The notes under the pieces were generated by a model. The model did no database searches and had not been told where the DNA came from. It saw nothing but the letters and a program-made list of their open reading frames with translations. DNA of 63,044 nucleotides, the filler included, from Guillardia theta CCMP2712 (taxonomy: Eukaryota > Protista > Cryptophyta): the NCBI RefSeq assembly GCF_000315625.1. It is 3 parts of 3 records of this genome, joined end to end, with 100 filler letters (N's around TTAATTAATTAA, not from the genome) between each part and the next. Parts side by side here need not be neighbours in the genome. Positions count along the whole stretch, not along the records: positions 59,770 to 63,044 come from NW_005434150.1; 2 more parts are not named here. One strand, given 5' to 3'. The translations under genes were made by a program, and so were the position numbers. Below are positions 59,770-63,044 of this stretch, piece after piece. Numbering within the stretch: the first letter of the stretch is position 1; each line of letters opens with the position of its first letter.

Positions 59770-59899
59770 AACACCACCACCACCATTTCCTCCTATTACT
59801 CCTCCTCCTCCTCCTCCTCCTCCTCCTCCTCCTCGTTTCTTCTCCTCTCCTCTCGCTCTTGTCCTCCTCGTTTCTTCTCCTCTCCTCTCGCTCTTGTAC

Positions 59900-62514
59900 C
59901 TCCACGCACACACACACGTCTCGGTAGCCTGCGCTCTCCTTGACGTCGTAGTTTGGGTCGAACCTGACAAGCATAGATTTAGCAGGGAGGACAGAGGAGG
60001 AGGAACGAAGAGAAGGAGGAGGATGATGATGTTGAGGAGGAACGAGGATGATGATGATGTTGATGTTGTTGTTGATGATGATGATGAGGAGGAGGAGGAG
60101 GGGAGTTTGTCCGACCTATTCTTGATGCTCGTGATGTTCATCAGCTTTTCTGGCCCAGCTTTCTGCGTGTCACGAGTGAGAAACAAGTCAGCCTCTGCTG
60201 ACTTCACCTTCTCCTCCTCCTCCTCCTCCGGCAGCAGCTGAGTAGCGACTTCACTGTACACCTCGAGTCTCTCCAACCACTCGTTGAGGTCCGTGAGGGT
60301 CTTGACGATGATGGTGCAACGGACGAGGTCGGTGAGACAGGAGGCATCGCGGTCGTAGGACCTGACAGCCTTCTGGATCGCTCTCGAGCTAGTCTTGAGC
60401 GTCCCCGAGTAGTACTTTCCCACCTGGTTCCACTTCTTCATGAACAGCTGGAAGTGAGGGCTAACGAGCTGGGCCGCGTCATAGACTGACTGAATCTTGG
60501 TGGGGATCTGAAGGATCTTGCCTCGTGTCGAGAAGCGAGAGCGTCGTGACCCATTACAAGTCAATGTCATGCTCAACTTCCGTTGTTTCCTCGCCCTCGC
60601 AAACCCGGACTTGATCGCCCGGTTGATGGCCCGCGACTTGCTGGCGATGTCCAGCAGGACCTCCGAGTCTCGCTCGATGATCCTGTCCCAGGCCTGCTCG
60701 ATCCTAGTCGTGTGCTTCAGGATGCCGTTGTACGCGTGCACGAGAGAGACGCGGTAGCGAACGATGATGAGCACAACGAGAGCGAACAGAGTCCCTCCGT
60801 ACACTCGGAACATGATGACAGCCCAGAAAGGTGTGATGTGCCCCATGGTTGTGGTGTAGATGCAGTATCCTCCTTGCAGGATGTAGAGCACAACCCAGAT
60901 GTACTTCTGTGCGAAGTAGGCACAGTACAGAGCAGTGAAGACGCAGAATGAGGCTGACAGACTCCAGTTCCCGTTGCAGGAGGCGCCGATGCCGTCGCCG
61001 ACGAAGCGGCACTGGATGTAGTCGAGGCAACCTGAGAGAAAGTAGACGATGGCTCCAAACCAGACTACCCCGAAGATCACCATCTTGCCTCGCACCGCAC
61101 TCACTCTCGATGCTGTGAAGATCCCGATGAAGATCCCAACAGCCCACGAGTAGTTCACGAGAGGGTCACACACGCGCGTCCATCGGAAGGTCTTGGGCTC
61201 ATGAGGAACTTGCTTGTTTGGCTGAAAAAGCCACCTGTCCTCCGTGAAGAGTAAATGAAACTGATAGTACCCGTAAGTGCAGTAGAGGCCGCACAAGCCG
61301 AGCATAGCCGCCTGTGTCGGCAGCTTCAAGATCCCGGTCTCGATACAGTTGGTCGTCATCATGGCGAGGATCCCGTCGGCCTCCACGTCCTTGAACGTGA
61401 AGAATCGAGTCCGCAAGTCTTTCATCCTGTCGTCATTCTCCATCTGATCCCGGTTGGCTCTCAGTTTCTGTACACTCTCTTCTGCGGGAAAAGTGACGGG
61501 CAGAACGTCCGTGTCATAGACCCTGCACTTGCCAGCAATGAAGCATTCCTCCAGGAAGCCGCTTTTGAACACCTTGTCAAAAGGAGTCTTGAAAGGAGCT
61601 TCAAACATCGAGAAGACGTCTTTGAATCGTCCATCAAGCCCGATCTCATGGATGATCTTGTTTAGTTCTGCACCATACGTGTTGTGCTTCATGTACTCCG
61701 TTATTTTGTTCTCCAGGTAGTTCATGAAAGAACCTTTCAAAAGGCTATTCATGTTCTGCAACCATTCGAACTCTAAGTCACTGTTCAGATTCCCTTGAAC
61801 GCAGAGGGGTTGCTGGAAGTAACAGATCTGTGTAGGACATATTCTCAACTCTCTCAAATCGTCTGCAGCGTTGCTTTTGAATTCTGAAAAAAATTCCAAG
61901 ACGACTTGCTTGATCGACCAACGATGGAGGTTGTCGCATATTTCTGACATCTTACCACATCCAATGTTGGCGAGTTCGGTCGCCGCGAGGTTGCACGTCA
62001 GGGTGGATGGGAGGTTGCTCAACTTGTTCAAGTCCTCTGCAGATATCGTCTTGCTGCCGTCGGATAGAAGGACCGGAGCGACCACCTTGATCTGAGAGCT
62101 TCCCCGATCGTTGTTGTAGATCAGATAAAGAGCCGCGAGCATCTCTGCGAGCATCTTGTCTTCTCTGTCCTGTCCGAGCTCTGGCTGGATGGTGGCCAGC
62201 TCTTGGAGAGTGTTCTGGTCGTGAAGGCTCGTGAAGATAGGAACGAAGCTGAAGGAGCTCGCAAGGTCGGAGGCCCATCTTGACTTGTCGTTGTGCACAC
62301 AGGCAGCCTGCATGTGATGTTGGCACTGAGAGTAGTGAGGGATGCGTTTCCACGTCATCATCTCTCCTTGAAACAGTTTGATACAGTGAAACATGTCCTG
62401 GTCGAACATGAGCTTGTGCATCTCAGCATGTATTCTTTCCTGGAAGTTGCCATCCTCCCTGCAGGACCAGAAAGTTGTGAACGACTGATAGTTTTCCAAT
62501 TCCACGGTGGCCAC
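59900..62514 (-). CDS. TIR-like + multi-pass membrane + RelA/SpoT-like nucleotidyltransferase protein (both ends incomplete)
   Basis: One ~800-codon exon plus a small exon at 59900-59964. C-terminal motifs GTLKTSSRAIQKAVRSYDRDASCLTDLVRCTII...ITSIKNR-FDPNY..SAGYRDVCVCVE; several hydrophobic helices at ~60745-61300; N-terminal TFWSCR...RWASDLASSFSFVPIFT...DKMLAEMLAAL...IKVVAPVLL follows a TIR pattern. Confidence 0.7.
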
Positions 62515-63044
62515 TTGAGTCGATGAACCTGTGTCAAAATCATGATCATTTTCACTTTGACATGTCGAACAACTGCATCACCTCTTTGACTCCAGCATGG
62601 CAGGCAGACACTGAAACAGCTGTGCCGCCATGATCCGTGATTGTTTGCTGCTTCTGATTGATTCCCATACAAGTGATTGTTTGTACTGTTGACTTGATTG
62701 GGTAAATCTTGATCGACAGTAACTTCCTCTAGCTGTGGATAGATCCTGACGGGGCCATGCACAAAAGCCATAGCTACCCACTTGTTACCCAAGTGGACAG
62801 GTTACCAATGTATCCCAACGAGCCCACCGATATTGTTGAACTAGTTTCCCATTTCACAGCTGCTTAATTGTTTGAGATTGGCAGTACATTCAAGGAAATC
62901 TCTGATGTAGTCCTAAAACCAATCGTTGTTTTACACCCCCAACAAATGTTTTCTTTCATCTGTCCCCGTTTACAAATATTCACCTTTGTTTCCCCCTTAT
63001 TTCTCCTCTCCTCTCCTCTCCTCTCCTCTCTCCTCCTCTCTCCT

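Follow-up and report, generated by a model that had tools for sequence, protein, structure and literature searches.

A cryptophyte-centred family of predicted six-helix membrane proteins with a Tas1-like RelA/SpoT synthetase fold

Eukaryotic alarmone chemistry is known mainly from plastid RelA/SpoT homolog (RSH) enzymes. We analysed a gene of the cryptophyte Guillardia theta CCMP2712 that lies at the end of a stretch of 63,044 nucleotides (nt) made of three joined genomic parts (assembly GCF_000315625.1; hereafter the window), on a piece of 3,275 bases (positions 59770-63044, NW_005434150.1) whose minus strand holds a single long reading frame. An earlier note, based on the sequence alone, had read 59900-62514 as a single exon for a protein combining a TIR-like domain, membrane helices and a RelA/SpoT-like nucleotidyltransferase. 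Our results point to a G. theta gene from a cryptophyte-centred family, coding for a six-helix transmembrane (TM) protein with a cytosolic tail of RSH synthetase fold that is nearest to Tas1, and we consider it likely that this tail acts as a pyrophosphokinase. Judged from sequence and structural modelling, the family is a eukaryotic, non-plastid, membrane-anchored and synthetase-only group of RSH proteins. Its new elements are the fusion of the RSH domain to six membrane helices and a lineage-specific N-terminus, the cryptophyte expansion to about eight loci, and the closeness to Tas1 rather than to the core of the Pfam family. All features of the window described below are on the minus strand.

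Positions 60116-60537 code for the front half of the RSH synthetase-like domain, in which the K..R...K motif for ATP (LKTSSRAIQK..Y, 60355-60399) and the Mg-binding Asp motif (LTDLVR, continuing as CTI, 60304-60336) are followed by an acidic linker and ITSIKN-R. A profile built from seven family sequences and compared with the PDB matched Tas1 with an E-value of 7.2e-6, and the match covered this half of the domain exactly. With a profile of 26 sequences Tas1 was again first (E 4.3e-5), the next entries being the small alarmone synthetases (SAS) 2BE3 and 3L9D at about 0.2, and a phmmer search of the PDB with a single paralogue sequence also returned Tas1 (6OX6, E 0.024). The AlphaFold model of residues 640-851 of paralogue P0005 (predicted local distance difference test score, pLDDT, 67; predicted template modelling score 0.68) showed the order of helices and strands expected for an RSH synthetase. 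All 50 PDB matches listed by Foldseek for this model were RSH synthetases, with E-values from 1.6e-5, probabilities of 0.96-1.00 and template modelling (TM) scores of 0.3-0.5, and they included SAS1, SAS2, RelP, RelSeq, Mtb Rel, Tas1, CapRel and an exported Streptomyces SAS. A shape search of the Atlas gave unnamed eukaryotic clusters (ciliates, diatoms) first and then bacterial RelA_SpoT clusters, at TM scores of about 0.5. Across an alignment of 26 domains the invariant residues were K, R and K of the ATP motif, L-T-D and V-R of the Asp motif, N of IKNR, G and R of GYRD, C-E-I of HICEIQ, and Y and R of the tail, while the residue after the G-loop Gly was Tyr, or Phe in three sequences. The window itself codes for the ATP motif, the Asp motif and the G-loop. 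Together, the sequence matches and the paralogue model indicate that the C-terminal domain has the RSH synthetase fold, which agrees with the nucleotidyltransferase assignment of the earlier note.

Several observations weigh against this assignment. The ExQ motif of the gene, with its catalytic Glu, would lie beyond the end of the piece, as the earlier note had anticipated; the transcript does continue for 225 nt in the expected frame, and HICEIQ was seen in paralogues, C-E-I being present in 26 of 26 domains. Searches of Pfam and NCBIfam with the window protein and paralogues yielded nothing usable, the window protein having no Pfam match at all and the full-length paralogues none to PF04607 (RelA_SpoT). 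Indeed, no member of the family reached the gathering score of PF04607: relatives scored 13.9-20 bits against a cut-off of 27. In favour of the assignment, some metagenomic relatives did match below threshold, with E-values of 9e-4 to 0.07. The structural model is of moderate quality and represents paralogue P0005 rather than the window gene. A last point against it is that the transcript protein on deposit, P0001, departs from the gene model in its tail beyond residue 837, and this isoform would be without the second half of the RSH-like domain.

Among known systems, the closest is Tas1, a type VI secretion effector of Pseudomonas aeruginosa and a (pp)pApp synthetase (PMC7229694; PDB 6OX6). 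Tas1 is the only significant sequence match of the family among solved structures. The two have the same RSH fold and share a variant ATP motif (K-x3-R-A-M/I-Q-K...Y) and a D-L-x-R-x-T-I-I-V motif, although past the first half of the domain the likeness is seen in structure only. However, Tas1 is a soluble toxin of bacteria that is joined to a PAAR delivery domain and partnered by an immunity protein (PMC7229694), whereas the G. theta protein is eukaryotic and has a six-helix membrane part and a large N-terminal region. The SAS enzymes, namely SAS1/RelQ, SAS2/RelP and toxic forms such as FaRel and CapRel, resemble the family in being synthetase-only RSH proteins without HD, TGS or ACT domains, and they provided the best structural matches among those listed (5DED, 5DEC, 6FGK, 6EX0, 7ZTB). 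Yet sequence identity is 9-18%, the SAS enzymes are bacterial or phage proteins of which none is membrane-anchored, and the G. theta family falls below the Pfam RelA_SpoT threshold. Two further sources describe synthetase-only RSH proteins of eukaryotes: the divergent SAS known as divRel, which occurs in fungi, Dictyostelium and diatoms (Atkinson et al., 2011; PMC3153485), and fungal NLRs whose N-terminal domain is RelA_SpoT (PMC4986451). Compared by these descriptions only, both resemble the G. theta family as non-plastid eukaryotic proteins with an RSH synthetase domain alone and no known role, and both differ in being soluble or fused to NOD or repeat modules and in having an RSH domain that Pfam recognises. 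A limited literature search, including PMC3153485 and PMC4986451, found no mention of a membrane-anchored RSH family in cryptophytes. The plastid RSH1-4 and CRSH proteins of plants and algae are also eukaryotic members of the superfamily, but they are long, plastid-targeted and equipped with HD and TGS domains plus ACT or EF-hand, none of which is detectable in the G. theta protein. No Pfam match to HD, TGS or ACT was obtained with the window protein or with four full-length paralogues, and the separation from plastid RSH drawn in the earlier note stands.

Upstream of the RSH domain, six conserved hydropathy peaks were seen both in the protein itself and in the alignment of the family, in accordance with the membrane helices proposed earlier. 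The predicted membrane block spans 60760-61314, with TM helices 1 to 6 at 61246-61314, 61111-61161, 61024-61083, 60910-60963, 60853-60903 and 60760-60831, respectively. It is preceded by the best-conserved segment of this part of the protein, a pre-membrane motif (D.EADGILAMMTTNCIETGILKLP, 61318-61395) in which D, G, L, A, T, N, E, T, K, L and P are invariant in all paralogues, and it is followed by a basic, helical juxtamembrane linker (60538-60759) that alignments show to be kept, together with the last helix, in distant relatives. Basic segments, read from the sequence, occur in the loop after TM2 (SRVSAVRGK), after TM4 (QK) and after TM6 (RYR...K...R), and the loop between TM3 and TM4 (60964-61023), with invariant D, Q and two Cys, is acidic or neutral. 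Because of these loop charges and the lack of a signal peptide in exon 1, an N-in/C-in topology is predicted, with both soluble parts in the cytosol and the two-Cys loop outside. Hence, both ends for which the earlier note had proposed enzymes are predicted to face the cytosol. The membrane block of the family matched neither a known family nor a structure, and PDB searches with profiles of the N-terminal, membrane and SAM-like parts had no significant outcome.

A six-helix block also invites a different explanation, in which the RSH-like domain is catalytically dead and serves as a nucleotide-binding or structural regulator of a transporter, channel or pore. The invariant polar residues in or beside the helices (D, Q, Q-G) would suit such a protein. 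In addition, residues 676-746 of paralogue P0012, which comprise the last helix and the helices after it, weakly matched SLATT_6 (E 0.003-0.014) and the PADLOC profile '2TM' (E 0.003), that is, pore-type effectors of bacterial nucleotide-signalling defence. This match was absent from the window protein and six other members, and a SLATT-like pore was rejected for the family since only P0012, of eight members, showed the weak match. The ATP motif lacks the canonical Arg that would stand two residues ahead of its first Lys, which would fit a dead domain, but alignments indicate that active Tas1 lacks it too. All classes of catalytic residue are invariant in the 26 sequences, and the RSH half is the slowest-evolving part of the protein (44-45% identity between distant paralogues vs 18-31% elsewhere), which is unexpected of a pseudoenzyme. 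Since the RSH domain is the part best conserved between distant paralogues, an active enzyme fits better than a relic, and we regard the regulatory explanation as improbable.

The earlier note had placed a TIR-like domain in the front part of the protein, an alpha/beta-patterned region (62059-62481) for which no family or structure match was obtained. The strings that it quoted are all present on the minus strand at their places, including TFWSC (62461-62481), FSFVPIFTS (62227-62253), DKMLAEMLAALYLIY (62116-62160) and IKVVAPVLLSD (62059-62091). If this region were a TIR domain acting as a NADase or signal generator, the protein would be a membrane receptor with two enzymes. The order of strands and helices at residues ~80-220 (FTTFWSC, a helix, IKLFQG, FSFVPIF, helices, IKVVAPVLL) fits a Rossmann-like repeat such as TIR, the Glu of DKMLAEM is kept in the subfamily of the window protein, and distant relatives carry a SAM domain, a partner with which TIR is combined elsewhere. 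SARM1 is such a TIR-SAM combination. However, TIR is just one of many Rossmann-like domains with which such an alternation of hydrophobic strands and helices would be compatible. TIR, TIR_2, TIR-like, ThsB_TIR and SEFIR were all absent at E≤10 when ten family members were compared with Pfam, and neither TIR nor any other significant match was found for the N-terminal region by profile search of the PDB, phmmer against the PDB or two embedding searches. The Glu proposed as catalytic is replaced by Ser, His and His in the P0009/P0013, P0011/P0014 and P0012 lineages, respectively, the alternative acidic site that follows the third strand is occupied by E, Q or D, and within residues 1-200 no Glu is invariant in the paralogue alignment. 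An AlphaFold model of the N-terminal region from a 10-sequence alignment reached a pLDDT of 45.8, mostly below 50, with only the FSFVPIFTS and IKVVAPV strands and some helices moderately confident. Fold searches with it returned single helices from VIA (Z≤4.4) and a best Foldseek E-value of 0.15, with no TIR among the matches, although the model is too poor for this to carry weight. The combined AlphaFold and Foldseek check proposed earlier thus supported an RSH fold at the C-terminus, in a paralogue, and at the N-terminus gave a model too poor to judge by. Because the N-terminal model failed, the TIR reading is unsupported rather than excluded, and we consider it unlikely. There is accordingly no basis yet for coupling a nucleotide signal to TIR activity, and the TIR link, which gave the finding its more exotic look, should be dropped until a fold is obtained. 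In the Atlas embedding search, a TNP-like_GBD match with low recognition was rejected as noise, the other matches being unnamed clusters.

Between this front region and the membrane lies a possible, tentatively assigned SAM-like helical stretch (KHNTYGAELNKIIHEIGL..., 61612-61689) with the pattern KHN..G.EL..IL.E.GL...F and invariant H, G and G. Two metagenome contigs (L001, at 381-590, and L002, at 1339-1683) carry intron-split eukaryotic genes whose last TM helix, linker and RSH-like domain match the family. An upstream exon in each passed the Pfam SAM_2 cut-off of 20.5 bits, with 21.5 bits in L001 and 21.9 bits in L002, so that their architecture reads SAM, membrane, RSH-like. The window stretch occupies the position equivalent to this exon and aligns with it weakly (BLASTP 0.003 via paralogue P0012; hhalign E 0.005-0.008 with a probability of just 5-7%), and it has no Pfam SAM match. 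From these alignments, a SAM-like oligomerisation module in the window protein is possible.

In the architecture that we propose, a cytosolic N-terminal part of ~440 residues would consist of the alpha/beta-patterned front, the possible SAM-like stretch and the conserved pre-membrane motif, and would be followed in order by the six TM helices (N-in/C-in, two-Cys loop outside), the basic helical linker and the cytosolic RSH domain. Going by the established chemistry of the RSH superfamily, the latter would take the beta,gamma-pyrophosphate from ATP and attach it to the 3'-OH of a purine nucleotide (ATP/ADP/AMP or GTP/GDP), and its product would be (p)ppApp or (p)ppGpp; the tRNA 3' CCA end, as in CapRel and FaRel2, is a less likely acceptor. 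Our guess, from the Tas1-like variants of the first two motifs, is a slight tilt to adenosine acceptors, which does not fix the substrate. Least likely of the alternatives is a translation-blocking effector like CapRel, FaRel2 and PhRel2, a suicide or antiviral switch pyrophosphorylating the tRNA 3' CCA end: toxic SAS of such kind exist according to two reports (bioRxiv 10.1101/2021.04.30.441581; PMC11245113), CapRel (7ZTB, 9ERV) is among the Foldseek matches listed, and the family is expanded with a fast-diverging, sensor-like N-terminal part, but the only significant sequence match, Tas1, is a free-nucleotide enzyme, CapRel ranks below the nucleotide-making SAS enzymes among those matches, and substrate choice is not addressed by any of the data here.

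For the pyrophosphokinase that we favour, the faster-evolving N-terminal and membrane parts may gate the activity, possibly through oligomerisation. Candidate roles would be those of a stress or second-messenger enzyme, or of an ATP-draining or translation-blocking antiviral suicide effector by analogy with toxic SAS, Tas1 and SARM1. A role in cell death or antiviral defence is worth testing because the closest solved relative, Tas1, is an interbacterial toxin, and, if true, the ATP-draining version would do with an RSH enzyme what SARM1-type proteins do by depleting NAD+. More broadly, cryptophytes and some other marine protists might run an undescribed cytosolic, membrane-tethered alarmone-type system, in which receptor-like proteins with fast-evolving N-terminal sensors, perhaps SAM-containing and oligomerising, switch on a Tas1-like pyrophosphokinase that makes a (p)ppApp/(p)ppGpp-like second messenger in the cytosol or drains ATP as antiviral suicide, a proposal that we hold as speculative and rather doubtful. 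If the enzymes are active, a eukaryote would be using pyrophosphorylated nucleotides, or the loss of ATP that comes with making them, outside its plastids. The family, expressed, with an intact-looking catalytic centre and a predicted cytosolic location, is a defined gene set for probing this idea.

The paralogue count suggested by the earlier note gave about eight G. theta loci: the window gene, GUITHDRAFT_135605, 122124, 122485 and 108018, plus the fragments 117880, 109016 and 163034. Further members came from Hanusia, Baffinella and Proteomonas, along with about 45 proteins on short metagenome or transcriptome contigs, and the whole architecture is present in four full-length paralogues (P0005, P0012, P0013 and P0014). 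Relatives from G. theta and its sister Hanusia phi were also retrieved by a word-index protein search. With the C-terminal domain cut out and used alone, the word-index search had no match, relatives being recovered only with a profile. When the N-terminal 371 residues were compared exhaustively by phmmer with 1.84 billion representatives, nine matches came back, all from the family save P0008, a spurious repeat protein, and the N-terminal part is considered lineage-restricted because of this result. Motif-based scans of 185,579 bacterial and archaeal genomes (one per species) and of IMG/VR found no relatives, so that no prokaryotic or viral donor can be named. The matches consist of cryptophytes and short marine eukaryotic contigs, and embedding and shape searches hint at possible relatives among unnamed clusters of ciliates, foraminifera and diatoms. 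One of the fragments, P0078 (GUITHDRAFT_163034, 262 aa), stops after a string of short family pieces, taken from the SAM-like stretch, the last helices and ITSIKNRYD..GGYRD, and may represent a paralogue that is degenerate or was mis-modelled.

The gene model was obtained by mapping onto the DNA the G. theta transcript protein P0001 (893 aa, Marine Microbial Eukaryote Transcriptome Sequencing Project, MMETSP), retrieved in the word-index search. The model protein is identical to P0001 at 837 of 837 residues (residues 1-837), which identifies the piece as nuclear DNA of G. theta. The coding part of exon 1 (62582-62771, ATG at 62771) specifies ~63 poorly conserved residues and is preceded by a 5' untranslated region reaching at least 62994, as contigs of runs X1 to X3 span 62580-62994 and join to 62526. 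Intron 1 (62529-62581, 53 nt, GT..AG) is supported by the joint 62526>62580 (cut +2) in contigs of these three runs. The large exon 2 (60116-62528) encodes the N-terminal soluble region, the membrane block, the linker and the first RSH-like half. It is separated by intron 2 (59964-60115, 152 nt, GT..AG), which contains a GAT/GAG microsatellite, from exon 3 (59900-59963), which encodes FDPNYDVKESAGYRDVCVCVE with the acceptor-binding G-loop (GYRD, 59918-59929); 59900-59961 and 60114-60164 are adjacent in transcript contigs. Contigs from three public runs belonging to three studies lacked both introns, as expected of cDNA, and paralogue transcripts read ITSIKNRFDPKYDARESAGYRD across the junction of exons 2 and 3, so that the splice from IKNR to FDPNY..AGYRDV foreseen by the earlier note is borne out. 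A donor site after exon 3 means that the gene continues off the piece, and the first letters of the 225 nt of transcript past 59900 translate to MGWTVIDFPR, which matches MGWKLKDFPRG in paralogue P0005. The gene is real, transcribed and spliced. In the raw RNA reads of run X18, one read fell on the gene in the share sampled.

Exon 2 probably hides a further, in-frame mini-intron, which inspection of the reading frame by itself would not reveal. A 45-nt stretch in the acidic linker (60163-60207, GTGAAG...ACGCAG, boundaries inferred from the sequence), coding for VKSAEADLFLTRDTQ, is absent from the 3,070-nt transcript contig of run X1, and record 1 of this run has 33 letters between 60164 and 60243 where the genome has 78. 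The single exon of the earlier note is accordingly right in that one large exon carries the regions that it described, but the frame does not start at 62514, an upstream exon lying across the 53-nt intron, and one transcript shows the mini-intron.

Residues 838-893 of P0001 form an unrelated basic tail (KEKVESRMSS...) after Lys837, for which the piece offers just a weak tblastn match (E 0.053). The point of divergence coincides with a donor-like AAG|GTGAAG, and possible explanations of the tail are use of an alternative 3' exon, a frameshifted isoform and chimeric assembly. Contigs of run X3, whose organism is labelled differently, carry a synonymous A>G at 61306 (Ala471) and a T>C at 62186 that changes Gln178 to Arg in the N-terminal region; both look like strain or allele differences. 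Two non-canonical joints, 60138>60273 and 61395>62063 (CA..CT and CG..CG on the plus strand), occur in runs X2 and X3 and are likely assembly joins with paralogues or chimeras, not introns. Low-complexity runs, CT-rich and GAT/GAG microsatellite-like, are present at 59770-59890, 59990-60110 and 63000-63044, that is, at both ends of the piece and in intron 2, and probably explain the shortness of the contig and the masking of reads there.

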